A stretch of DNA of 64,000 nt, from NCBI GenBank assembly GCA_020184695.1, contig JAANOX010000279.1, positions 186,001 through 250,000 of the forward strand, in the 5' to 3' direction. Positions 2,520 through 59,527 of the stretch are shown here, piece after piece. Made by a program: the position numbers and the translations under genes. The notes under the pieces were generated by a model. That model searched no databases and was not told the DNA's origin. It worked only from the letters and a program-made list of their open reading frames with translations. The DNA comes from Histomonas meleagridis 2922-C6/04-290x. Lineage: Eukaryota; Protista; Parabasalia. Positions within the stretch are counted from its first letter, which is position 1. The number at the start of each line of letters is the position of its first letter.

Positions 2520-5500
2520 TTATTTGGAAAGAAGATTAATGTCTTCTTGAGTCAATGGAAGATAATCACTTAGTGTTTTAAATATTTAAAATCGATTCCA
2601 AACAATATATTAAAACCTTAAAATATTGAAACAAACATTAAATAAATAAATTTTATATCTTTAAGACTAAAATCGATTCCTTTATGAGTGAGAAGTAATT
2701 GAATAATTTCAGCATTCTCAAATTTAGCTGCATACATAAGTGCTGTTTTAAATAATTTGCATGATTTCCAAATATTGTCTTGAAATCGTAAATAATTGAA
2801 ATAAATATTAAATAAAACAATTTAATATCTTGAATATTGACATCAATTCCTTTTTGCTCGAGAAGTAACTTAACACCTTTTGACTTTTCTCGTTTAGTTA
2901 ATATGATAAGTGCTGTTTCAAATAAATTAAATAATTTCCGAATAATTTTTGGAAACTTTAAATAATTTTTTGAAATCTTAAATAATACAAAAAAATATTT
3001 TGAGCATTAACATCAAGACCTTCTTTTTGGGTAAGTAATTGAATAACTTTAACTTTAGCACTTTTAGCTGCACGTAATAATGGAGTTGCAAATAATAAAC
3101 AGAAACTCCAATTAAAATTATGAAATTTTAAATTATTAAAATAAATTTCAAATCATTCAAAAAAATATTTTTAATATTGACATTAATATCTTTATGATCA
3201 ATCAGTAATTTAACTATATCAAAATCACTATCGAATAATGCTATCAAAAGTGCTGATTCAAATAATTTTAATGATTTCCAAATATTATGTTGAAATCACA
3301 AATTATTACAACAAATATCATATAAAGCAAATAAATATCTTGCGCATTAACATCAATTCCGTCTTTTTCAAGAAGTAATTTAATCATTTCAATATTACCA
3401 GAAAAGACTGCTTCCATAAGCGCTGTTTGAAAAAATTTAAACAATTTCCTAATAATATATTGAAACGTTAATTTAATAATATAAATATCATATAAAACAA
3501 ATAAATATCTTGTGCATTAACATCAAAATCTTTTTGTTCAAGAAGTAATTTAGCAAATTCATTTTTTTCATGTTCAATAGCATGAACAATTGGTAAAGAA
3601 AATATTATGAATAATTTCTAAATAATATTATTAAATCCAAAATGATTAATACAAATTTCAATAATAATAAAAAAACTTTAATTACAGAATTTATATTTTC
3701 TTTTCGTACAAGTGCTAATAATAAATCAGGATCGCCTTTTTCAAATACTAAATCCATGAATGGCTTAAATAAAGTAAATAAATTCCAAATATAATATTGA
3801 AATAAAAAATAATCAAAGCAAATTGAAAACATTATAAATTAATAGCTGTAACATGGATGTTGATGTCTTTATGCTCAAGAAGTAATTTAAATATTTCATT
3901 ACAACCATTTTCAAATGCAAATAACAATGGTGTCCCAAAAATTTTAAATTAATACGAAATATTATTTTGAAATAGAAAATTAGTATATTTGACTTTTTCA
4001 ATATTAACATCAATTCCTTCATGCTCAAGAAGTAATTTTACCAATTCTATATTATTATTTTTAATTGCAATAAACAGTGGTGAATAAAATATTTAAAATA
4101 ATTATCAAATATTATTTTAAAATATAAAATTATTGAATTAAATATCAAACATGTTAAACAAATGGCAGCATTATTAACATCAATTCCTTTCTGTTGAAGA
4201 AGTAATTTAACAACATCTATAGCACCAGAATTACAAGCAGCTTTTAATGGTGTCTTAAATAATATAATAAAATACCAAAAAATTAATTAAATAAACAAAC
4301 TCACAATTGACATCAACGTCATTCCTTTCAAGAAATGATTTAACTTCATCTAATTTCGAATTTTCGCATGCATCAATGAAATGTTGTTTAAATAATCTAT
4401 AAAAACAAGAAAATATTGAAACAAAAATCAAAATTATGCCTTTCAATCTCACTTTTAATTTTTTCAGCAAAATTTGGATGATCACTTTCTAGTGCATGCA
4501 TAACAGCAGTTTTAAATATTATAAAAAAACACCGAATTTTATTTTGATATATTAAATAATAAAAATATATTTTAAATTAAATTAAAAAATGTCTTTGGTT
4601 TCCGTATCAACTCTTTTATTTGTACGAAAGAAAGTAGATAAATTCAAATTGTTCCCGCTTTTAGCTATAAACATTAGAGCTGTTAAGAAAACAATGAATA
4701 AATTCCAAAAATGATTACCAAATATCAAATCATTAAAATGAATTTTAATACTATCAAATAAATATTCTTTGCATTTAGATCAATATTATCTTCTTTAAGG
4801 AGATCTGAAATAAAGGAAAATGAATCTTGTTCTGCAGCATACATAAGACATGTATTAAATAATTTTAATGAATTCCAAATATAATTTATAAACATTAAAT
4901 TAAAACAGTAAATTTCAAATGTATTGAAGAAACATCTTTAGCATTTACATCAAATCCTTTTTTTTTCATAAGTGCATCGAAAGATTGTATATTTCCATTT
5001 TTGATTGCATGATGAATGGCTAACATATTATCTTATAAGAAATTCCAAATCTAAAAATGATATATGAAATTTTTGAAAAAAATATTAAATGTTTGAAATT
5101 CATATCTTTGGCATTAATGTCAATTCCTTCTTGGTCAAGAAGTAATTGAGTAATTTGATAGCGATATGTTTCAGCTGCCCACATAAGTGCTGTTTTAAAT
5201 AATTTAAATAATTTCCAAATATAGTTTTGAATTATCAAATTTTTAATTTGATCTTTAAATAAAGTGTTTAAATATCTTTAGCATTAATGTCAATTCCTTT
5301 ATCCTCAAGAAGCTCTTTAATTTTGTTTAAGTTTTTAAGTTTAACAGCATTTATTAAGGGAGGATCATATAAAGAAAAAATATATTAAATGATCAAAATA
5401 ATCTTCAAATAAATTAAATAAATGTCAATGGCGGCATTTTTATATATTTCTGATTCACTAAAAGAGTCAGTATCAGAACTATCAGAAGTATAACTCGTGA

Positions 5501-5522
5501 TACTACTACTGTATGAGCTCAT
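2520..5522 (-). CDS. Multi-ankyrin-repeat protein (about 612 aa if inserts are removed), split into 19 segments by 18 non-GT-AG inserts
   Basis: ATG at 5522, preceded by Inr-like TCACA. Segments of 30-34 codons mostly read as ankyrin repeats (e.g. FKTALMWAAETYRYQITQLLLDQEGIDINAKDM, FGTPLLFAFENGCNEIFKLLLEHKDINIHVTAI). The last segment FKTLSDYLPLTQEDINLLSK ends in TAA at 2522-2520. No stop codon in any coding segment (manual translation). Confidence 0.8.
2583..5420 (-). other. Array of 18 intron-like inserts in the ankyrin gene
   Basis: Operational boundaries lie between the I/V/M codon after AKD and the F-equivalent codon two before TA/TP (a few nt of slide possible). 71 nt: 5200-5270, 5030-5100, 4860-4930, 4690-4760, 4517-4587, 4090-4160, 3770-3840, 3603-3673, 3433-3503, 3263-3333, 3093-3163, 2923-2993, 2753-2823, 2583-2653. 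51 nt: 5370-5420, 3940-3990. 34 nt: 4260-4293 and about 4393-4426 (inferred). Confidence 0.8.
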
Positions 5523-6649: not shown

Positions 6650-7618
6650 TTACTGATTCTTTGATTTTAACTTTGCAAAATGCCTTTCTACAACTTCAAC
6701 CGGAAGCGCGTATACTGGATCCATCTTTGGAACTCCATATTCCTTAAGTTTATCAAACAACGAAAGCCCAGCAATGCCAAGGAACGTATGGAATGGGTCT
6801 GCAAAGTTTCCAGGGCGATCACCGATTCCACCATCTTCAGCATCTTGTGAAGAAAGCACGAATTCCTGCAATTTGTCGGCGTCGACCCATTTCTGCTTCC
6901 CAATCATTGCTATTGACGCGCCAACCCACCACGAGTAGCAAACATCGGGAAGCTTCTCAGGGCGACCGTTAAAACCGCCCTTTGGATCTTGTCTTTCTGA
7001 AAGCCAAAACCCGAGAGATTCGTGGTCTATTTTGTCGATTGCGTTACAGATCGAAAGGGATGTAAGGACTGTAAGTACTTGGCCTGCATGTGACTCACAA
7101 CCTTCAACTACACCAAATCCTCCATCGAAATTTTGGCATTTGATAAGCCATTCAACAGCTTTGTCAACATTGACGGCATCTAAATGTCCTAATAATGCAA
7201 GACTGGCTAATGCACAATATGAAAATCGTGTATCAACTTCTCCCCATTTATCACCCATAAATGAACCATCTTCAAGTTGTAATGTCTTGACCCATGAGAC
7301 TACTTTGTCGGAATCAATGCGATCAAGACAATCAAATAAAATTAATACTTGGATCCCTGATAAGGTTTGATGAATGTGTGGATCATTTCCAACATTGCCT
7401 GCAATTCCTCCTTCAGGTGTTTGGCAGCTGACTATGTAGTCAACTATTTCTTCTTTGTTGACTTTGTCAATTCCGCCAAGAAGATAAAGAGCTGAAAGTC
7501 CCCAGTAATAAGTATTTGTACGAATTGGGTAGGTCTTCATTTGTTCGAGTGAATCCTTGTCATTTAATAACTTTAGAAGAAAATTAATGTGCTTCTCTTT
7601 GAGTAAAACAGTGCCCAT
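6650..7618 (-). CDS. RABGGTB: Rab geranylgeranyltransferase beta subunit
   Basis: Prenyltransferase repeats: [45 protein letters not shown]. Likely ATG at 7618 ([10 protein letters not shown]). Confidence 0.93.
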
Positions 7619-7625
7619 TTTAAAA

Positions 7626-7661
7626 AACCGTTTTCGTTTGAACAAAACCGTCAAAAGTGAC
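7626..7661. promoter_or_regulatory. M3-like (AACCGT, twice) and M2-like (AAAGTGAC) core promoter motifs upstream of RABGGTB
   Basis: AACCGT at 7626 and 7646; AAAGTGAC at 7654. AACCGT recurs near other starts (18838, 20278, 23653, 33925) and AAAGTGAC at 20306. They resemble motifs described for Trichomonas vaginalis promoters. Confidence 0.5.
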
Positions 7662-7952
7662 ATATAAAATGTTTTGTATCAGCTTCTGTGCATTTAAAGC
7701 TCTTTTTCATTAATTTGCTTGATAATAAACAATCATGCCATGATAAGGTTTGTATATCTATGATTCCCAAATAAATGTAAATAATTAAAAAATTTGGAAT
7801 TAAATTTAAATATACTCAAGTGAACAATATTAAACAAGTAGGATGTGGATTTGCTTCAATGATTGATATTTTATATGAATGTTCCGATTATTTTCTTGAA
7901 AAAAAGATCTTATTTTTAAACGGCCTTCTTTTATAAACGTACATCGAAACTT

Positions 7953-10103
7953 ATGTCTGGCTTGCATCAATATGTAACATTAGATGCAAGCACAATAGAA
8001 AGGAAAGCAAGGAAGAAAAGAAAACCAGGTTTTAAAGAAAATCAAGAAAATTTTACCGGCGGTATATTATCTCCATTTTATCCAAAATCTCAGCAATACA
8101 ATTTTATAGGGTTGGATGTGCAGGATAGCAATCGACCTCTCCTTGTTTTCCCAGATGGACATATTTTTTTAGAAACATTTTCCCCATTTTTTAAACAAGC
8201 AAATGATTTTGTTCAACAAATTGCAGAACAACTCACAGATTCTCAATACATTCACGAGTTTCAAATCACTCCTCATTCGATTTTACATGCACTCTCCAAT
8301 GAAATAACAGAAGAAACAATAATTCGGACTCTCGAATTATTTAGTCGAATTCCAATAGCAGACGATCTAAAAACAATGATCACAAGTACTTCTGGAACAG
8401 CGGGCAATATTATAATTATTGAAAGTAATGATAGATTTTTCATTCAATGTTCAGAAAATCCCATTTTCGAATATCTTCGTTCAACACTTTCAGCATTTAT
8501 ACCCGAGAAAGATCCAAACAAAGATTACTTTGAGATACGAGACCAAACTATTCTTCCATTTCTGATATCTGGTATTGGTATTACTTCTTTTGATTCTCAA
8601 AACTCAATAATTCGTAGATTTGAAGTCGATTCGACCAATGTTGAAAATGTCAAAAAAGAATTACGTCAAAACCTAAAAATTCCATTTATTGAAGAGTTTG
8701 ATTTTGTAACTATGAACTCAAAACTTGACATTGAACTTGCTCATGAATTTAAGTTAATGTCATATCAACAAAGTGCTATAGTTAACACATTTAAAGATGG
8801 ATTTGCGAAAAATGGCTTCATTGTTTTACCATATGGAACAGGTAAAACCATTGTTGGTATATCCATTTTATGCACAATGAAAGTTTCCACGCTTATTTTT
8901 TGCGAAACAAAAAAAGATTTGAATTATTGGTATAAAGAATTACAATACCGTACTAACATTAGCCCGAATTTACTCATTAAATATTCTCCAAATATAGTCA
9001 TAGAATATCCTGATGACCCATATATTTTAATTATCACATATTATGATTTTATGCGGAATCATAAAAAACATGGATTAAGTGGCCAACTTGCATCTGTTCA
9101 ATGGGGGCTGGCTCTACTTGATAACATCCAATGTTTTTTTTCACAGAAATCAATTTGTATTTTTGACATTGTGAAAATCAAAACTAAAATTGGATTGACA
9201 CCGACTCGTCTTAAATCAGATTTATCTGTTGTTGACTTTGAATCACTTATAGGCTCACAAATATATTCGACAACATTTTCTAATCTTATAAAAGAAGGGC
9301 TATTTCCTCAAGTTAATTGCTTCGAAGTATACTGTACTATGGCGAATATGTTTTATGGGTCATATCTCAAATCAAATTTAATCCTGAAAAAGCGTATATT
9401 ATCAATGCTTAATCCAAATAAATTTCGTACCGTTGAAAGATTAATTAAATATCATGAAGAAAGGAAAGACAAAATCATCGTTTATTCTGATGTTCCATTT
9501 GTTCTTGATTTATATCATAAGAAATTAGACGAACTCAACATAGAACGACCGTTAATTACTGGCAAAACGTTAAAAAGTGAACTTCAAAGACATATTGACA
9601 AGTTTACAAGCTCTCCGACCGTTAATTGCTTGTTTATTTCACGAGTTGCAGATAAGTCATTTGATTTTCCTACAGGTAATGTTTTAATCCAAATTTCATC
9701 ACATTTTAGTTCTGCTGATATTGAGATAAGAAGAATCAGCCATTTTTTAAGGCCGAAGCAAGGACAAAATAAAACATATTTTTATGCTGTTGTTAGTGAG
9801 GATACAAAAGAAATGTATTTCTCAAGAATTAGACAACAAGCTTTAAGGCAAAATGGTTTCGATGTAAATATCGTCAATAATCCAAGAAAAAAATGGAATG
9901 TTAAATCGAGATTACATTACTCAAAAATTAAAGAACAAAATGAATTGTTGGATGAATGTTCAAATGCACCAAAGGATTCGGGAATAATTGAACATTTCGA
10001 AGATGATGAGGAAAATATCGAAAATATTTTAAGAATTCCACAAAGTTTTGCTCCTTCAAAACCGAAAATAATGAACGCTTATAAGCCCCTACAGAATAAA
10101 TAA
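7953..10103 (+). CDS. XPB/Ssl2 (ERCC3)-like helicase paralog with degenerate motifs
   Basis: N-terminal XPB domain (PDGHIFLETFSP, IHEFQITPHSI), Walker A LPYGTGKT, MLNPNKFRTVERLIKYHEERKDKIIVYSD. Walker B reads LLDNIQ instead of LDEVH. Confidence 0.85.
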   Translation: MSGLHQYVTLDASTIERKARKKRKPGFKENQENFTGGILSPFYPKSQQYNFIGLDVQDSNRPLLVFPDGHIFLETFSPFFKQANDFVQQIAEQLTDSQYIHEFQITPHSILHALSNEITEETIIRTLELFSRIPIADDLKTMITSTSGTAGNIIIIESNDRFFIQCSENPIFEYLRSTLSAFIPEKDPNKDYFEIRDQTILPFLISGIGITSFDSQNSIIRRFEVDSTNVENVKKELRQNLKIPFIEEFDFVTMNSKLDIELAHEFKLMSYQQSAIVNTFKDGFAKNGFIVLPYGTGKTIVGISILCTMKVSTLIFCETKKDLNYWYKELQYRTNISPNLLIKYSPNIVIEYPDDPYILIITYYDFMRNHKKHGLSGQLASVQWGLALLDNIQCFFSQKSICIFDIVKIKTKIGLTPTRLKSDLSVVDFESLIGSQIYSTTFSNLIKEGLFPQVNCFEVYCTMANMFYGSYLKSNLILKKRILSMLNPNKFRTVERLIKYHEERKDKIIVYSDVPFVLDLYHKKLDELNIERPLITGKTLKSELQRHIDKFTSSPTVNCLFISRVADKSFDFPTGNVLIQISSHFSSADIEIRRISHFLRPKQGQNKTYFYAVVSEDTKEMYFSRIRQQALRQNGFDVNIVNNPRKKWNVKSRLHYSKIKEQNELLDECSNAPKDSGIIEHFEDDEENIENILRIPQSFAPSKPKIMNAYKPLQNK

Positions 10104-10139: not shown

Positions 10140-10320
10140 AAAAACTTCAAAAATGATTTTGATAAAACAATTCATAATAATAAAATTTTTTAAAAATATT
10201 AAATATTCCCCGAATTACCTTTTTGCTCAAGAAGTAATTTTACGATTTATAAATGACCTCCATAAGATGTTAATATTAATATAAGTGGTGTATTAAATAA
10301 TTTACATAATTCCCAAACAG
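10140..10320 (-). pseudogene. Solitary decayed ankyrin repeat with flanking insert-like sequence
   Basis: Sense strand TTTGGGAATTATGTAAATTA-TTT AAT ACA CCA CTT (FNTPL...GGHL*IVKLLLEQKG); has an in-frame stop and truncated DINAKD. Confidence 0.65.
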
Positions 10321-12441: not shown

Positions 12442-15400
12442 TTAAGCTTTGTAGAGATCGTTTTTGTTGATTGCACCAGTACAGCCGCCATTGTGATAAA
12501 TAACTGCTCTGTTACCATTAATTTCTCCAACCACAAAAACTGCATTATACACCCAGTTATCCCAGTGATAGTTTTGACCATAAACTTTTGCTCCTACTCT
12601 GACCCTAACTCTGTCGCCAACTCTGATTTCTCTTCTTTCTCTTTCAATTCTCTCTCTTTCTTCTCTTGCCTTTCTTTCTCTTTCTGCTGCTTCTCTTGCC
12701 TCTCTTGCCTTTCTTTCTCTCTCTTCTCTTTCCATTCTTTCTCTTCTTTCTCTCTCTTCTTTTTCTCTTCTTGCCTTTCTTTCTCTCTCTTCTCTTTCCA
12801 TTCTTTCTCTTCTTTCTCTCTCTTCTCTTTCCATTCTTTCTCTTCTTTCTCTCTCTTCTCTTTCCATTCTTTCTCTTCTTTCTCTCTCTTCTCTTTCTCT
12901 TCTTTCTCTTTCTTTTTTGATACCATCTATTTTTCTATGTACATCATCTGCTGTTGTATTTACAATTGAAGTAACATCTTGAATAACTTGATTTTTATGA
13001 GCGCTGTCATTAGGGGGAATTTGATTGAAAAATCCTTGTGTATTAATAATTTGGTTTTTCAATTGATCGCGATTAATTTCAATAAGTTGATTTGGTGTTT
13101 TATCAGCAGATTTAGCTATTTGCGTTGCTTGATTTTACACCTTGTTCTAATTTCTGCAAACGCTGGTTTCTTTTGAACGTTTGCATTATATTCATTGCAA
13201 TATTTTTTGCTAACTTCTTTAAGCTTATTATTTAAATCGTTTTTATGATTGTTTGGAAAGTTTTCATATGTTACTTGTTTCGAAATAATATCATTAAATA
13301 TTTGGTTTTCATCAACTTTAGGTGATTCATCACGATAATTACTTGCTCTTGATTTTGCATCAATAAATTGCTTTGCAAATCCATCAGCAATTTTAATTTT
13401 ACTATCAATTAATGCTTGAAGTTTTTGTTTTGAGTTCCTTTGTCGAGTGAATTCATTAGTACTCTCTGCACTAATTTTCTTAATTAAATCACTAATTAAT
13501 TTTATTTTATCAGATCCTTTAACATCTTCATTTTTAATTGGAACTTGACTTTTAATGTATGTTTCAATCTTCTCAGAAGTACATGAATTTGGATCAATAT
13601 CTTCAAATACAATTTTACCATTTAGATTTTGCTTGATAAATTCAGATGCTTTGTTAATAAACATTTGTCTATATGCTTCAAATATTGATGCCCATGATCT
13701 ATACTTATCTTTGTTAATACTTCCATGTACATATTTAGCATATTTTAATATTTGATTTTTGATAAGATTATGTCGAGTTTCATTAAGCTGAATACCATCA
13801 AAATATTGCTTAATAAATATCGGAATTTTTTCGTTTGTGTAATTTTCTGGCTTCTTAACTAATACATCAAAATCTTCTTTGTAATAAACATTTTGGAACA
13901 TGTTTTGATAATCAATAAGAATAATACTTTTAATTTCATCATATTTTTGAGCTGAAAATTGATCCCATTTTGGAAGTGCTGAATAAGCGTTATTGAATAT
14001 TATTGTTATACGGTTAATAATTATAGATATTGTATTGTTAAGTTCACTTGATTTATATTCTTTCATATAATCAAGTAATTGTTGATTATTATAATTCTTA
14101 ATGATCCCATCACATATTTGTTGTATATGTGTAGTATCAAATAAATTTTTGTCAACATCTTCTTGAAATGATTTACTTTTCATTAAAGAAAGAATTTGAT
14201 TTGATGCATTTAAAACTATTTCATCAGATGTTAATGTTTCTGTCAAATCCTCTATATGTATTGTTAATTGTTCATTAGCATTTGACTTTATTTGTATACA
14301 AGCATTTGTAAATTGAATAGTAATATATTCTTTAATTAAATTATTATACATTTCAAGTGCCTCTTTTGAAAATGAATTAACTAAGAAATCATTTGCAACA
14401 TTATTATCTTTTAATATATTTAAACAAAATGTAAAATCTTGTTCTAATAATTTGATACACTTTGGAATATAAACTTGAAGTTCTTCATCAAAAACTTGCT
14501 TAAATATATTTGATAGGCTAGAATTAAAATCTGATTTAAATGATGGGATTACTTTGAACTTCGAAAAGAATTTGTAATATTCTTCTATATATGAACATAA
14601 TGTTTGCCCATCAATTTTAGGTCTACTTTTTATTGTATCATTTATCAAAGTTACTATATCTTGTAATGATTTCCAATAAACATTAAGGCAAACATCATCT
14701 TGAGGAACATCATTACTGCATTGATATGGTCCGCATATAATAATATCTATATCATCAAGATATATTTTTGGTATATTGTTATCAACAAAAAAGTCAGAGA
14801 AAATCCTTTGTAAAGTTTGTTCATATGATTTTCTGTTTTTATTAGTATTACGGAAATTATTACGATCAATGGTATATCCGCATGCAGTAGAAAAGATTGC
14901 TGTCTTTGGATTTGGTGTTTTTAGTTTTGTTTTCATGAATTCAGAAAGCATAAACTTATTTATAAGTTGAGAAACATCATTTGTTTTAGGTGGGCCATTT
15001 GTAATAGAGATAGTAATTGTTGCAACTTGGAATAAAGTAAGAATCCCAGAAATTAGATATTGTGAAGAACCTTGAAGTGATTCAAATCCTTCTGTATCAC
15101 AAAAGAAAAGGTCACAATCTTCTGTATTACTTTTGTTTTCAACACCGCATACTTCTAGTAACTTATGAAGTCTAATTGGACCATAGATATTACATCCAAC
15201 TGTAATACTATTTGCTGTGTTTGCGGCTTTGAATGGTTCTTGAATAACATAGGTCTTTTTATTGCCTATAATTCCATGTATAAGCTGATTTAAAGTTGTA
15301 CTTTTCCCACTTCTTGTTGTTCCATAAAAAACAATCAGATGGGGATAATTTGCATTCTTAAAGGCATCTATTACCTCTTGATTTATTAAGGGCACACCAT

Positions 15401-15789: not shown

Positions 15790-16060
15790 ATAATATTATA
15801 ATAAAAATTAAATAAAATATATATACATCATTATAATTAACATCAATTCCTATTTGCTCATTAAGCAATTTGACCATTTTGAGTTACATATATGAGCACT
15901 GTATTAAATATTTTAAATGATTCCCAAATATTATTTTAAAGCTTGAAATCATTAAATTCAAAATCAATTCGTTTTTGCTCAAGAAGTAATAATATTACTT
16001 CTGAGTTACCATGTTCAGATAAAGAAATAAGTGTTGCTTTAATTAATTCCAAATATTTAT
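15790..16060 (-). pseudogene. Decayed ankyrin+insert units (about 2)
   Basis: Remnants of LLLEQKRID and EQIGIDVN, plus the insert core AATAATATTTGGGAATCATTTAAAATA-TTT AAT ACA; contains indels. Confidence 0.6.
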
Positions 16061-17507
16061 TTGGTATTGCTCTTTGTTGAAATAAACAATAAATCAACTA
16101 ATTTAATTTTTTTAGTGTTAATATCAATTAATAAATTTTTTTGATCAAGAATACATTTTACAAGGAAACTATTTCAAGTCATTGAAGAATAAACCAAAAT
16201 ATCATTTGGGAATTAAACATTTTCCAAATTGGAAAATTAATTTAGAAATGAAATCGAAAACTTCATTCCTTCTTCCAACAAAAACAAAAAGAGTTCATAG
16301 TTATAACGCATTATACATTCCTTTTGTATTTCTTATTATCTTTGTAAAGTTTATTTTCATAAAGATAATGGAAAACTTCATTTTTATGATATTGAATTGT
16401 AATATCAAATGTATGCTGATAAATCAGAAACATGTAAATATGTTTCACTTATATTAAGATGTATTTATTAATAAAAATTTAAAACATTTAATAGCAGAAA
16501 AAAATGCTGCATAATAAATCAACGAAACATTTTATTTATTAATAAAATATGAACACCTTTCATAAGTTGATGGTTCGATAAATTGATTAAAATTAATTAT
16601 CTTGTGATGATAGATCTCGAAGTTTCATCATTTCGAATTATTTTTGAGATTTTATTCGGATTAACTCCTTCTTTTAATAATTTTTATGAAGTTCCCAATC
16701 ATTCTTTGAAAGTGTTTTGTAATAAACTGAAAAAGGTAAATATGTTTAATGTTACTGATTCCTTTTTCTTTTAAATATTATATGAAATTTAAAGATTTTT
16801 TATTTAAAATTTTTGGTTTAATAAGCTGCTTCCAGGAAGGATGATACAGAAATTAATTAATTAAACGAAATTAAAAGAATACGGATTAACATTATACAAA
16901 CCCGTGATGAAAGATGTTGATGTTGACACGTTTCCTTCATTTAAAGAAAAATTAGATTCAATCAAAATAATTTGAAATTTCTAGAATTCCTTTGAGAATT
17001 CATTCATCATTAATGATTTTACCTGAGTTTTTTGTTGAATTATGACTTTGTTGATTTCCCAAATGAAAAATAAAACAAATTTTCCGTTTCATTGCTTTTC
17101 TTGGATCCAATAACTTTTGCTTAATTATACATCTTTTATAGTGTTTTAAATATGTGCATAATTAAAATTAAAATTTGTCTCGATTCATCAGAATAAATAA
17201 ATTTCGTTCGATAGTAAAATATTGAAATGAGTGAAACATCATGTTAGTTTAATATTAAAGGTATATGTTTATATCAAAAAAAATCATTTTTTATGAAAAT
17301 CAGCTGATTTTCAAGACGATTTAATCATTTTTTATTAATTTGCTAAATAAAGTAATTACACATCTTAACTTTGCATTGCTTTTTTTACAGTAATGACGAC
17401 ATGTTTCTATAAAAACAAATAAACTTGATAACAAGAATTTTTTGAAAATTGCAACCATAACAAGAATTGACTAAGTTTGTTTGTAACGAAAATCAATTTT
17501 AAATTAA

Positions 17508-45641: not shown

Positions 45642-47486
45642 TTACCCTTTTTCGTGAAGCAAGTTAACTATTTCTGCAAATCAATCTAAATGTGCCAACT
45701 TCTCTGCCAAAGAAAGTGCTGTATTAAATATTTTACATAATTTCCAAATATTATTTTGAAATATCAAATTATTTAAATAAATTTTAAATAAAACAAATAA
45801 ATATCTTTAGCATTAATATCAATTCCTTCTTGTTCAAGAAGTAATTTAACTATTTCTGTATGACCATTCCAAGATGCAAACATAAATGCTGTATTAAATA
45901 ATTTAAATAATTTCCAAATATTTTTTTGAAATAAGAAATTATTAAAATAAATATTAAATAAAACAAATAAATATCTTTAGCATTAATATCAATTCCTTCT
46001 TGTTCAAGAAGTAATTTAACTATTTCTGTATGACCATTCCAAGATGCAAACATAAGTGCTGTATTAAATAATTTAAAAAATTTCCAAATATTATTTTGAA
46101 ATAAGAAATTATTAAAATAAATATTAAATAAAACAAATAAATATCTTTAGCATTAATATCAATTCCTTCTTGTTCAAGAAGTAATTTAACTATTTCTGTA
46201 TGACCATTCCAAGATGCAAACATAAGTGCTGTATTAAATAATTTAAAAAATTTCCAAATATTATTTTGAAATAAGAAATTATTAAAATAAATATTAAATA
46301 AAACAAATAAATATCTTTAGCATTAATATCAATTCCTTCTTGTTCAAGAAGTAATTTAACGATTTCTGTATTACCTTTATCAGATGCATAAATAAGTGCT
46401 GTTTCAAATAATTTAAATAATTTCCAAAGATTATTTTGAAATCCCAAATTATTAACATAAATACAAAATAAAACAAATAAATATCTTTAGCATTAATATC
46501 AATTCCTTCTTGTTCAAGAAGTAATTTAACTGTTTCTATATGATCATTTAAAGATGCATAAATAAGTGCTGTATTAAATAATTTAAAAAATTTCCAAATA
46601 TTATTTTGAAATAGTAAATTATTAAAACAAATAATAAATAAAACAAATAAATATCTTTAGCATTAATATCAACTCCTTGTTCCAAAACATATTTAACAAG
46701 TTCAGAATTTCCTAAATCTATAGCAAATGTTAATATATTACTTGGAATTAAATTATTTTGAAGAAAATGTTTAACAAGATATAAATTGCCAATTTTTGCT
46801 GCTTCATTGATTGTAGATTCATTAATTTTCATTCGTTTTTCAAGTAAATATAAAAAAATTTCATAATTTCCGCTTTTGATACATATATTTCCCAAATCAT
46901 TAATATCCTTTTGTTTCATGTTTTCATTTAAATTTTCTAATTTATTTTCATAAAGATATTTAAAGATATCATTTTGATGAAATTCAATTGCTGTTTCATA
47001 TGCATCTTCAAATGAAGAATGATTTTGTTCACATAAATGAATGATTTCTTCATTTCCACCTGCAACTGCATATTTACCTGTTTTATCTAATTTTGCACCA
47101 TTCACAAGTAAAAGTTTAAAACATTTAATAGATCCAAAAAATGCTGCATAATCAATTAATGAAACTTTTTTCTTGTTAATAAAAGAACATCTTTCATAAA
47201 GTGATGGCTCAATATATTGATCGAAATCAAAATTTGTTTGTGATGATATTTCTCGAAATTTATCTATTTCGTCATTTAGAATTATTCTTGCAATTTCACT
47301 TGGATTATGTCCTTCTTTAATATATTTTTTATGAAGTTCCCAATTATTCATTGATAATTCTTTATAATTTTCTATAAAGATTTTATCAATTTTGTTCCCA
47401 TTGAAATGAATTATTGTTTTAATTTCATTTTCTGTTTTATAATGAAAAAAACGGTGAGTTAATATTTTTGATAATGCTTTTATCAA
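45642..47486 (-). CDS. DUF3447-type ankyrin protein whose C-terminal repeats are each interrupted by a 71-nt insert
   Basis: Insert-free N-terminal exon (IILNDEIDKF, SLIDYAAFFGSIKCFKLL, AVAGGNEEIIHL), five full ankyrin segments and a terminal segment. TGA at 45683-45681, TAA at 45644-45642. The start is uncertain: the ATG at 47505 is 1 nt out of frame, across a T7 run. Confidence 0.72.
45729..46680 (-). repeat. 170-bp tandem repeat (99-nt ankyrin segment + 71-nt insert), six near-identical junctions
   Basis: atatctttagcattaatatc occurs at 45801, 45971, 46141, 46311, 46481 and 46651 (exact 170-nt period). Inserts at 46579-46649, 46409-46479, 46239-46309, 46069-46139, 45899-45969 and 45729-45799. 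Confidence 0.93.
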
Positions 47487-52399: not shown

Positions 52400-53000
52400 A
52401 TAATTTCCAAATATTATTTTGAAATATCAAATTATTATATTAATATGAAATAATACAAATGAATCTATTTAGCATTAATATCAAGTCCTTGTTTATTCAA
52501 GAGTAATTTAACAATTCTATGAACTTTTTCATATGCATAAAACGAGCGCTGTTCAAAAATAATTTCCAAACATTATTTTGAAATCCAAAATTGAAATAAG
52601 TTTTAAATGAAACAAATAAATATTTTCAGCATTTACATCAATTCATTCTTTTTCAAGGAGTAATTTAACTATTTCAATATTTCCTGATTAAAAGTAATCA
52701 TTTTCAGTTTCGTTTTGGTTAAATTTTTAGAATGAAGTTCGATATGTTTGGATGTTCCTTCTATGGATGTTGATATTACATTCATTTGCAAATGAGTCAT
52801 AAATCCAATTGGTGGCAGACAGTTTTTCTAATATATTTGAAATATAATGTGATTATTAAGTGTTGTTGCTATGATAGCACCAGTTCTTTTAAAGAAGATG
52901 ATAATTAATCCACATTTCAATCTGTTAACAAGAAATTACTAATTTCCTGTGAACAAATAATTTTTAAATTAGCGAAAGAAAATCTTGTATCATCAATTCA
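52400..53000 (-). pseudogene. Decayed DUF3447-ankyrin gene with insert-containing units
   Basis: Remnants of LLLEKE*IDVNAE and LDINAK, with insert cores (ttccaaatattattttgaaat at about 52405 and 52563); many stops. Confidence 0.6.
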
Positions 53001-53834: not shown

Positions 53835-56667
53835 TTATATATTAATTTTATTATTTTCTTCGAAATCTGTTGCAAATGGATCTTCTTTAACGTTATCCAT
53901 TTTCATTACTGTTTCCAATGTATCAATGTTTTCAAATTCATTTTGTTCTTCACTTTTTGATGTATTTTCTTCTTTAATTTTTTTGTTTTTGATTTTAATT
54001 ATTAGAATTATAAGTAAAATGATTATGATTATAGCAGCAATTGTAGTACAAATAGATATGATAAGTGTTTGATTATTTTTTGATGATGCTATGTCTGTTG
54101 GATATAAAATCGTAAAGAAATTAGAATAAAAACTGAGATAATATGAATATATAACTATTGTATATTTATAGTAGAATAATAATGTCGGAATGTAAATGAT
54201 ATCTGTCGATGCATGTGAAACTGAAAATGAATTTGAAATAGAAGTGTAAATTGATAGAGTTTTCGTGAATATTAACGTAACTGTTAGTGATAACATGTAT
54301 GAAGTACTTATATTACTAAGAATTGTGAAAGTAATATTTGGATCATACAATTCAAACGTATTCGTAAATGTGTTTGAGAATGATTTCGATGATGTAAATG
54401 AGTTCGTAGGCCATGGAAAACATCCGGCAATTGTTATGTCACGTGAAATATTTAATGCACCAAAATTATTTGATTCAGATTCATATTCTGTTGTCGTCAT
54501 TACAATTGTAGTGTTAATTGATTCAAATGAATTCGATTGAATATTAGGTTCTGTTTCACCATAATAATAAATACATTTAAGTTTAGTACAATTTGCAAAT
54601 GCTCCCGATTCAATTTCTTGTAAATTGTCATAAATGAATATCGTATATAAATTAGAACAATAATAAAATGAATTCATACAAATCTTTTTAATACATTTAG
54701 GAATTTCAAATATATTATCTGTTCTTCCAATTGGATATGATATGATTTCTGTAATGTTTTTATTATAAAGAATTCCATCTTTTTCATAATTAGAATAATT
54801 TGCATTATTTTGTGAGACATTAATAAATTGAAGTTGATTACATAAATAAAATAAATTTGAACCAATGATTTCAACTGAACTTGGAATTGTAATATTAATT
54901 AATGAAATACAATTTCGAAATGTTGATGATCCAATTTCTTTAATTCTTTCGCTGAGATTTACGATACTCAAATTAGTGCATGAATAAAATGCATGTGAAC
55001 TAAGATTTTTAACTGTACTTGGAATTGTAATATTAATTAATGAAATACAATTTCGAAATGTTGATGATCCAATTTCTTTAATTCCTTCGCTGAGATTTAC
55101 GATACTCAAATTAGTGCATGAATAAAATGCATGTGAACTAAGATTTTTAACTGTACTTGGAATAGTAATATTAATTAATGAAATACAATCTTGAAATGAT
55201 GATGATCCAATTTCTTTAATTCCTTCGCTGAGATTTACGATACTTAAGTTTGTACACGAATAAAATGCATGTGAACCAATGATTTCAACTGAACTTGGAA
55301 TAGTAATATTAATTAATGAAATACAATTTCGAAATGCTGATGATCCAATTTCTATAATTCCTTCTTTGAGATTTACGATACTCAAATTAGTGCATGAATG
55401 AAATAAATTTGGACCAATGATTTCAACTGTACTTGGGATCGTTATATTAAATAATGAAATACAATCTTGAAATGCTGATGATCCAATTTCTTTAATTCCT
55501 TCTTTGAGATTTACGATACTTAAGTTTGTACACGAATAAAATAAATTTGAACTAAGATTTTTAACTGTACTTGGAATAGTAATATTAATTAATGAAATAC
55601 AATCTTGAAATGATGATGATCCAATTTCTTTAATTCCTTCGCTGAGATTTACGATACTTAAGTTTGTACACGAATAAAATGCATGTGAACCAATGATTTC
55701 AACTGAACTTGGAATAGTAATATTAATTAATGAAATACATGAATAAAATACATTCGATTCAATACTTGTAATAGTATTTGGTATATTAATATTTTGAATA
55801 ACATGTTGAAAATGCTAACATTTCAATTGATTTAACACCTTCTTCAATGTTAACTGTATATAAATTTATACATGATTCAAACGATGATGATCCAATAATT
55901 TCAACTGTACCTGGAATAGTAATATTTCGTATTGAAGAACATGATGAAAACGATGATTTTTGAATAATTATTACACTTTCTGGAATTATTATCATATCTG
56001 TACTTTTCCCAAAAGGAAAATAAAGAAGTTCTGTAATATTTTTATTATAAAGAATTCCATCATTAGCATAATTAGAATAATATGAATAATTATTTAATAC
56101 TTCGATCATTGAAAGATTAATACATCCTGAAAATGATGAAATAGAAATCGTTTTAATTGAATTTGGTATTGTAATATTCGTTAATGAAATACATTTCTGA
56201 AATGCATTTTTTTCAATTTCTTCAATCCCTTCGTTAAAATTTATTTGAAATAATTTAGAACATTATTCAAATGAATAGGGTCCAATTGATTTAACTCCAC
56301 TTGGAATATCAATATTTTCTAATGAAATACATTCACGAAATGATGATGCAGATATTGTTATTACTGATAAAGGAATTTTAATATTTTTTAATAATGAACA
56401 TGAATAAAATGCTTCTTCTGGAATATTAGAAATCCCTTCTTCAATTATAATATTTATAGCACGTTTTTTAAGATCGGTATATATAAAATCATTATCATTT
56501 TGAATCGTCAATGTTTTTGAATCTTCATCAAAATAATATTGAAAAGTATATGTAAAAAACATGAAAAATATAAATAATAATGAATGAAGATTTTTATTTT
56601 TAATTGAAGACAATTTTTTTTTGTTATTGCTTAATAAGAACATTATAAGATTAATTAAAGCAATCAT
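53835..56667 (-). pseudogene. BspA-like LRR surface protein with one in-frame TAA (about 56264) and one frameshift (about 55790)
   Basis: TpLRR repeats, S/T stalk, TM helix and EDPFATDFEE tail. The frame is open from about 55785 to 53835; the upstream ORFs are collinear. Confidence 0.8.
54880..55745 (-). repeat. 138-bp coding tandem repeat (two 23-aa TpLRR units per period)
   Basis: Near-identical blocks encoding CISLINITIPSxVxxxxSxAFYSCTNLSIVNLSEGIKEIGSSxF. Confidence 0.88.
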
Positions 56668-59029: not shown

Positions 59030-59450
59030 ATTTAAATAATTTAAAACTTTGAAATTTCAAAATACCAAAATAAATTTTAAACAAAACAAATAAATATTTT
59101 TAGCATTAATATCAATTCCTAAAAATGATTGAAAGAAATATTGATGAAAATAAATGAACATCAGTTCCTTCTTGTTCAAGAAGTAATGAAACGATTTCTG
59201 TATAACCATTTAAAGATGCTAATATAAGTGATGTCCAAAACAATTTAAATAATTTCCAAATATTATTTTGAAATCCTAAATTATTAATGTAAATATTAAA
59301 TAAAGAGAATATTTTTAGCATTAACATCAGTTCCTTCTTGTTTAAGAAGTAATTTCACAATTTGATCATCATGACCATTATAAGATTCCCACATAAGTAC
59401 TGTCCAAAACAAATTTTATAATTTCCAAATATTATTCTGAAATATTCCTA
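59030..59450 (-). pseudogene. Decayed ankyrin+insert array (about 3 units)
   Basis: FWTVLMWESYNGHDDQIVKLLLKQEGTDVNAKNI, a 67-nt insert, then FWTSLILASLNGYTEIVSLLLEQEG and a deletion junction; no start or N-terminal domain. Confidence 0.7.
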
Positions 59451-59527
59451 AATTAAATTAAATTAGAATTCGTTACTTTTTGCCTCATAAAGAACATAAA
59501 AAAATTTAAAATTTATATTTACTATAT

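Follow-up and report, generated by a model that had tools for sequence, protein, structure and literature searches.

A conserved untranslated element between ankyrin repeats of parabasalid genes: candidate intron-like sequences without GT-AG ends

Parabasalids are textbook intron-poor organisms, and the few introns that they have carry rigid GT-AG ends and branch-site motifs. Introns that have neither GT-AG nor conserved terminal dinucleotides are found in euglenids, whose nuclear protein-coding genes contain such non-conventional introns. The introns described in Trichomonas vaginalis and T. stableri are of type A (55-196 nt) or type B (23-28 nt); Trichomonas introns have invariant GT..AG ends and a 12-nt 3' motif containing ACTAAC, with no more than one or two introns in a gene and fewer than 100 in a genome. 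Histomonas, too, has been reported to be intron-poor and to have no more than one intron in any gene, and the intron models of Tritrichomonas foetus have been declared unvalidated. Surveys of Trichomonas introns filter junctions by canonical motifs, and would therefore have discarded junctions of the kind described here. We have analyzed a 64,000-nt stretch of DNA (contig JAANOX010000279.1, positions 186,001 to 250,000; hereafter the window, to which all coordinates refer), in which an ankyrin-repeat gene, gene 1, is interrupted by 18 copies of an AT-rich element that is mostly 80 nt long. We show that the element is not translated, and that the ankyrin cores flanking it are kept open by selection. 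From these selection patterns in the DNA, we infer that the elements are probably removed at the RNA level. The original prediction on this locus had supposed that such a system is undescribed in parabasalids, and our searches of the literature on parabasalid, Tritrichomonas, Histomonas and Dientamoeba introns indeed found nothing similar.

Gene 1 (2520..5522, minus strand, as are all its parts) runs from an ATG at 5522, directly preceded by a TCA-type initiator-like sequence, to a TAA at 2520, and comprises 19 coding segments and 18 elements. A recount confirmed that all 19 segments are free of in-frame stops, and each has a whole number of codons. Segment 1 (5522-5424) is a 33-codon N-terminus rich in Ser, Thr and Asp, which has no Pfam match and is short, unlike that of the DUF3447 type, and segment 19 (2576-2520) is a short non-ankyrin C-terminus ending in the TAA. 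Segments 2-18 are ankyrin cores of about 30 codons that correspond to positions 4-32 of Pfam Ank (PF00023); several single segments score 24-32 bits against this profile (cut-off 21.1), with matches covering positions 3/4-32. The element takes the place of the inter-repeat loop, which corresponds to profile positions 33 and 1-3. The first element (5367-5423; 57 nt) is in phase, contains one in-frame TAA and has the ATTTATTT 5' start, but lacks the GG motif described below. It is followed by segments 2-6 (5366-5274, 5193-5104, 5023-4934, 4853-4764 and 4683-4591), which together with four 80-nt elements occupy 4591-5366 in units of 170 nt, and by a fifth 80-nt element (4511-4590) after segment 6. 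In the degenerate middle of the gene (4254-4510), segments 7 and 8 (4510-4427 and 4386-4300) are accompanied by elements of 40 nt (4387-4426) and 46 nt (4254-4299), about one or two 20-nt modules short of 80 nt. Segments 9 and 10 (4253-4164 and 4083-3994) precede a 60-nt element (3934-3993), which is in phase, contains an in-frame TAA and has a TTTGGG that abuts the next core. The remainder (2577-3933) is a regular array with units of 167-170 nt, made up of segments 11-14 (3933-3844, 3763-3677, 3596-3507 and 3426-3337), segments 15-18 (3256-3167, 3086-2997, 2916-2827 and 2746-2657) and eight 80-nt elements.

Measured as the distances between 30-codon cores, the element lengths are, in order, 57, 80 (five times), 40, 46, 80, 60 and 80 (eight times) nt, so that 14 of the 18 elements are exactly 80 nt long. 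The claim that the inserts occur in all three phases holds with these revised lengths of 40, 46, 57, 60 and 80 nt, and the unit length has been corrected to exactly 170 nt in most gene 1 units. The joined coding length of 1839 nt given originally stands if about 9 nt of each insert are kept (exactly 9 nt would give 1842 nt); it does not apply to the joined cores alone, which, by length count, add up to 1680 nt.

The elements are mutually homologous and can be aligned without gaps, and they are more similar to each other (65% pairwise identity) than the cores are (58%). The inserts had been described as sequences without shared splice ends, which is correct, but the description missed that they are related to each other and have conserved internal motifs. 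The element consists of four internal 20-nt repeats. The 80-nt consensus, which was derived from 34 copies located in the window or at three further loci, starts with RTTTATTTG, contains TTTCAAAATAATATTTGGAAT and ends with TTATTTAAN. Information peaks at the near-invariant GG in TTTCAAAATAATATTTGGAAT (about 3 bits for each G) and at a C located 13 nt upstream (2.2 bits); an example of this best-conserved part, at 2764..2786 (minus strand), is an imperfect palindrome, ATTTC and GGAAAT separated by 13 nt, that includes the GG. Length variants of 40, 46, 57, 60, 63 and 81 nt have been seen. All three phases occur because the 40-, 60- and 80-nt variants differ by 20-nt modules, each of which displaces the frame by one. 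When read in the upstream frame, the GG motif encodes x-Phe-Gly-x, as an ankyrin loop needs, with GGA, GGT and GGG variants. The motif may be a relic of the loop glycine codon, and the element probably originated when about 20 nt around the sequence encoding the loop were duplicated in tandem. The arrangement resembles the exon-per-repeat genes of intron-rich eukaryotes, in which an intervening sequence occupies the same position in every repeat and has been duplicated with it. However, those genes have GT-AG introns of uniform phase, whereas here phases 0, 1 and 2 all occur and the element is more conserved than the exon.

The evidence that cores and elements have had different fates comes from their stop codons. 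In gene 1, no stop is present in the core frame over about 480 codons, whereas the two remaining frames have 30 and 84. Neutral simulations, which started from the consensus core, applied the number of changes observed in each core and assumed a star phylogeny and equal site rates, predicted about 10 stops in 13 gene 1 cores (probability that all are open, ~3e-5). The same holds for the cores of a full-length relative on a metagenome contig, L020, described below, in which 7.6 stops were expected under neutral simulation and none is present (P ~4e-4). In the elements of 14 units, on the other hand, 17, 52 and 15 stops were counted frame by frame, versus 28, 62 and 21 in simulation; no frame of the element is protected, and stops gather near-neutrally. 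Stops close every frame of the element at 4511-4590 within the first 19 nt, in accordance with the earlier remark that the inserts are full of stops. All units share the out-of-phase 80-nt element, and it must therefore predate the 35-40% divergence of the units; consequently, the cores stayed open while the elements drifted. These results show that the element is not translated and that selection keeps the flanking cores open, as had been proposed from the first inspection of the locus. It follows that production of the protein needs nearly the whole element to be taken out.

The most likely mechanism, for which we consider the chances to be about even, is that the elements are unconventional intron-like sequences that are excised from the RNA by non-canonical rules. 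According to this proposal, the inserts would be copies of one ancient conserved element in the loop between successive ankyrin repeats, and they would be removed from the pre-mRNA, by the spliceosome or another enzyme, like an intron placed once per repeat. The signals for removal would be other than terminal GT-AG, and recognition would probably involve the conserved internal motif together with the AU-rich composition. The wider proposition is that Tritrichomonadida-like parabasalids, i.e., the organism of the window, its gut relatives, T. foetus and probably Histomonas, may possess an unrecognized class of AU-rich sequences of about 80 nt, built of 20-nt modules, without GT-AG and placed once per ankyrin repeat with up to 18 copies per gene, that is precisely excised from RNA by undescribed machinery or rules; we hold this with a confidence slightly short of even.

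The reading frame sets limits to such an excision. A cut common to all 80-nt units could keep at most about 5 nt at the 5' side and at most about 9-11 nt at the 3' side of the element, and a sequence excised within these limits would begin with AT or GT and finish with AA, TA, TT or AT. No GT..AG or AT..AC solution shared by the units is in frame, and at nine of the 15 gene 1 junctions tested there is no in-frame, stop-free GT/GC..AG solution. The trichomonad 3' motif, with ACTAAC fused to AG, is absent from the consensus and the alignment of the elements, and so are the trichomonad motifs GTAYGT/GTWYWD and ACTAACACACAG, although GTTTAT does match the degenerate 5' motif. The original observation that canonical GT..AG, AT..AC and ACTAAC signals are missing was therefore sound. 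As to U12-type AT-AC introns, many elements have AT at -2 and AC at +82, but a spacing of 84 nt breaks the frame, and neither ATATCC nor TCCTTAAC is present in the element alignment. Boundaries formed by AT-AC, GT-AC, TA..TA, TTAA..TTAA or direct repeats were rejected as being out of frame or inconsistent. A single excision up to the GG motif, which removes 59 nt, leaves stops in the retained 21 nt in four units, and removal of only the first 20-nt module, yielding the 60-nt form, leaves downstream-frame stops beyond it in nine of 34 units. Retention of the four codons x-Phe-Gly-x as a micro-exon between introns of 51 and 17 nt would produce a perfect ankyrin loop and would fit the conservation of the GG and some synonymous variation; this option is mentioned as a remark only, as it needs a 17-nt intron and there are no splice signals for it.

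The elements thus share with trichomonad spliceosomal introns the phylum, the short length, the AT-richness and, in many copies, a GTTTAT start fitting the published GTWYWD, but differ from them in that most copies start with A, that there is no in-frame AG and no ACTAAC, and that 18 of them are present in one gene. They resemble the non-conventional introns of euglenids in having neither GT-AG nor conserved ends. However, the euglenid introns are defined by base pairing that joins their ends, and the two lineages are unrelated. We found no consensus RNA fold of the elements, and pairing between their ends was not above chance (duplex mean z -0.05), the tendency to form a central hairpin being weak (z -0.7). 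The unpaired ends and the lack of a consensus fold argue against recognition of the euglenid type or of the endonuclease type, including that of bulge-helix-bulge introns cut by tRNA endonuclease, and splicing by an endonuclease and ligase, which had been suggested originally, is likewise not supported by structure.

The design is not restricted to gene 1. A search of open reading frames (ORFs) from metagenomes in the European Nucleotide Archive (ENA) with one stop-to-stop piece as the query matched dozens of sequences, the metagenome loci being short. The contig L020 (3.1 kb) contains a full-length relative, with an intact N-terminal ORF of 271 residues, 14 intact cores and an intact C-terminal tail, which is unique and in frame with the last core. 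Its elements comprise nine of 80 nt, two of 60 nt and one of 74 nt; one of the 80-nt elements is closed in the two frames that matter, and one of the 60-nt elements, which is in phase, contains an in-frame stop. The last junction of L020 lacks an element and reads Asp-Lys-Asn-Gly-Phe-Ser, a canonical ankyrin loop, so that four loop codons (Lys-Asn-Gly-Phe) stand there in place of the element. The same 80-nt element is present in three loci from other samples (L004, L005 and L007). Long generic ankyrin matches (P0077, P0078, P0088 and P0196) were set aside as they belong to unrelated organisms, and a scan of Joint Genome Institute (JGI) metagenomes with a 22-nt motif gave chance matches only, without ankyrin cores.

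The window itself contains further copies, all on the minus strand. Gene 2 (45650..47486) is an ankyrin copy of the DUF3447 type with a C-terminal array of five to six 170-nt units that are 93% alike and have the same 80-nt element; it is probably a truncated copy. Membership of the DUF3447 family was found for gene 2 only, through the homology of its N-terminal domain to Histomonas and Tritrichomonas DUF3447 ankyrins. A decayed copy (15800..16800) has stops and frameshifts in its N-terminal domain and cores, a decayed fragment of two units (52400..52700) has in-frame core stops, and a second decayed fragment, of two to three units (59040..59480), is located directly downstream of an HSP70-like gene. 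The element is present in all three, and all three carry core stops. Fifteen codons directly past the XPB stop (10202-10246, minus strand) resemble the C-terminal half of an ankyrin core and are probably another relic of the family. Among the metagenome loci, L018 matches PF11929 (DUF3447); a one-base frameshift in its unique N-terminal domain (~355-400), together with stops in core and element, marks it as a clearly dead member.

Named species carry the design too. The nearest homologues of the gene 2 N-terminal domain are Histomonas meleagridis proteins, whose gene models end at the first element, and farther ones are T. foetus TRFO_20532 and TRFO_21112 and a T. musculus protein. In both TRFO_20532 and TRFO_21112, intact ankyrin cores continue in other frames past the annotated stops, and the cores in T. 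foetus are separated by AT-rich interruptions of ~19-20, 46, 47, 72, 81 and ~190 nt. The 81-nt interruption has the same layout as the element, with a GTTTAT start and a TTTGG about 20 nt before the next core. Removal of 20 or 47 nt from one interruption lets the flanks rebuild a Gly-x-Thr-Pro junction, and one interruption, of 72 nt, could be GT..AG. TRFO_20532 with the 0.8 kb downstream of it is on MLAK01000617.1 (about 74,360-75,110), and TRFO_21112 is on MLAK01000628.1, within 58,239-68,302.

Several points weigh against excision from RNA. A single search for spliced products bridging the interruptions of TRFO_21112 was empty, partly through its length filter. The elements have no conserved terminal dinucleotides and no ACTAAC-like branch site, so no known machinery fits, and the known trichomonad introns are rare GT-AG introns, one or two per gene. 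Keeping 9-12 nt of the element would place a Phe in the loop where ankyrins usually have Gly. Dead copies are frequent in the family, with three in the window, and gene 2 is missing about 120 N-terminal residues. Finally, of the two selection checks that had been proposed, the first came out clearly, the cores being free of stops, whereas the ratio of nonsynonymous to synonymous substitution rates (dN/dS) is only weakly below 1: it is 0.80 among the gene 1 cores (0.72 in their structural C-terminal half), 0.54 among the L020 cores and 0.76 between L004 and gene 2 units. It should be noted that this is a soft test, to which we give little weight because synonymous sites are saturated in this A+T-biased genome.

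The alternative that best survives, although we consider it unlikely, is that the arrays past the first element are not expressed, being dead or "born dead" in a gene family with fast turnover, that translation covers only what precedes this element, and that the cores are intact by recency or by repeated gene conversion from functional paralogues. In a variant, the arrays would be silent donor cassettes, with the conserved elements serving as blocks of homology. The many decayed copies in the window and on L018, the missing N-terminus of gene 2, the public Histomonas and T. foetus gene models that end at the first element, and the gene 1 dN/dS near 1 would all agree with this. Variable cores with conserved flanks also recall cassette systems such as the vls locus of Borrelia and the VSG pseudogenes of trypanosomes, in which variable open segments alternate with conserved non-coding blocks and the whole is untranslatable as it stands. 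However, unlike silent cassettes, the present arrays have no known expression site or intact acceptor, and L020 has a complete N-terminal domain with a start and a C-terminal tail, as would be normal for a gene; these intact ends weaken the alternative. Since the shared element arose, moreover, the cores of gene 1 and L020 have gained none of the stops expected under neutrality while the elements gained them freely, and the copies that are truly dead do have core stops. The design persists in several independent metagenome assemblies, apparently from different organisms, and in T. foetus, and any donors in gene conversion would share the design and would themselves need a function.

It is very improbable, in our opinion, that long hydrophobic loops between the repeats are translated from the elements, with the 80-nt forms being frameshifted derivatives of the 63- and 81-nt versions. 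This idea draws on metagenome ORFs that cross two or three 63-nt elements, on an ORF with 63-nt elements that runs into a transmembrane tail, on TRFO_21112, which reads through the 81-nt element, and on some third-position changes that look synonymous. On some contigs, gene callers do read through in-phase 63-nt elements as a conserved peptide. However, when whole contigs are considered, which removes the bias towards ORFs, about four of 13 such elements hold in-frame stops beside intact cores. P0022 (L024, 86-496) cannot be translated with the standard code, as the gene caller took an in-frame TGA as Trp, and structure prediction for a read-through ORF gave no confident fold (pLDDT 39.6), a result that is uninformative by itself. 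Because of the in-frame stops, the TGA-as-Trp call and the lack of a confident read-through fold, we conclude that the 63-nt versions are not coding either. In addition, gene 1 and L020 cannot be read through, and 80 nt is the dominant length across several independent assemblies. Some database "proteins" of the family are thus artefacts that arose when a protist contig was translated with an alternative code of bacteria. On L006 (1-444), an array with 63-nt elements is followed, without a change of frame, by a stalk, a single transmembrane helix and a tail that is short and basic, and some members of the family may thus be membrane-anchored.

Less probable still is that the elements stay in the mRNA and are crossed by the ribosome, either by programmed -1 frameshifting in most units or by bypassing, the latter having been among the original suggestions. 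Such behaviour would have parallels in T4 gene 60, the byp sequences of Magnusiomyces mitochondria and the frameshifting of Euplotes, in which coding sequences are likewise interrupted by short gaps that are not translatable and are retained in the mRNA, with many shifts per genome in Euplotes. At about 12-15 of the 18 junctions, the ORF of one core overlaps that of the next in the -1 frame, the AT-rich sequence offers many slippery-looking heptamers, and in some units a stop stands right after the upstream core, as at the take-off site of T4 gene 60. However, there is no path from frame to frame at three of the 15 gene 1 junctions tested and at several junctions of L020, units that are stopped in both frames. 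The windows in which a shift is permitted are not homologous, as some units have them at the 5' end but other units at the 3' end, and there are no slippery sites where they are needed; in unit 1, the codons of the obligatory window (AAA GAT ATT) are unable to re-pair in -1. The direction is not uniform either, since elements of 40/46, 57/60 and 80 nt would require shifts of +1, 0 and -1, respectively, and in-phase elements have in-frame stops inside them. Stops also accrue neutrally in the very frames that would have to be read. For bypassing, the consensus unit has no identical in-frame codon pair at frame-consistent spacing, i.e., matched take-off and landing codons are absent, and there is no take-off hairpin. 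Either form of recoding would require 18 consecutive events at nearly 100% efficiency.

Least probable of all is that the elements are removed from the DNA by programmed excision or somatic rearrangement, for which their modular length and the short direct repeats (ATTTA) near both ends could aid slippage or deletion, or that the frame breaks are assembly errors, 80 nt differing from an in-frame 81 nt by one base per unit, as no TA or TTAA pair occurs at frame-consistent spacing in the element alignment, DNA elimination is not known in parabasalids, neighbouring genes have long intact ORFs, and the 80-nt form, which led us to reject an indel artefact, recurs in independent contigs from different samples whose names (SPAdes-type NODE, k87, scaffold) point to different assemblers.

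If the elements are excised from RNA, parabasalids would have a second, motif-independent route for removing intervening sequences, and intron counts and ankyrin gene models would be wrong in Tritrichomonas, Histomonas and their relatives; in the present annotations of these parasites, hundreds of ankyrin genes would be cut short where the first element begins. The elements would also provide a tractable system, as T. foetus is a cultured species for which RNA-seq data are public, for studying how introns originate by local tandem duplication and how they are recognized without terminal dinucleotides. If they are not excised, the presence of dozens of open cores in untranslatable arrays across several independent assemblies and in T. 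foetus would still need an explanation.

The window is AT-rich, with about 30% G+C, and contains intron-less housekeeping genes in the standard code, encoding a PI3-kinase, RabGGT-beta, XPB, a RhoGAP, STT3, GWT1, an actin-family protein, HSP70 and a BspA-type leucine-rich repeat (LRR) protein. An alternative genetic code was rejected, as there are long standard-code ORFs and the genes stop with TAA (15), TGA (4) or TAG (1). A scan of the window with Rfam detected no snRNAs or other known RNAs. XPB is 44% identical to gut-metagenome sequences and 37% to Histomonas and Tritrichomonas, and RabGGT-beta is 88% identical to that of a gut relative; on these sequence similarities, the source is a parabasalid of the Tritrichomonadida neighbourhood. 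The original assignment to a parabasalid is in agreement with this, XPB, RabGGT-beta and the DUF3447-ankyrin genes being nearest to Histomonas and Tritrichomonas.

Some minor observations concern the neighbouring genes. In the window (6650-10103), the RabGGT-beta and XPB genes are direct neighbours in divergent orientation, whereas in a relative from the human gut (L001, 1887-12172) they are 7 kb apart with three genes between them; between the window and L001, RabGGT-beta is 88% and XPB 44-50% identical. The PI3-kinase ORF (213-1898) has PIK and catalytic domains and starts about 200 nt from the window edge; it is short for a Vps34-type kinase, and its N-terminal part may be upstream or absent. 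A CT-rich imperfect microsatellite with periods of 24 and 33 and strong AT and GC skew is located at 12627-12915, between two minus-strand ORFs. The BspA-type LRR gene (Pfam LRR_5; 53835-55385, minus strand) is associated with tandem repeats of 138/414 nt that are 90-92% alike (54839-55739). Its ORF is unbroken, and the intervening element is therefore seen here in ankyrin genes only.

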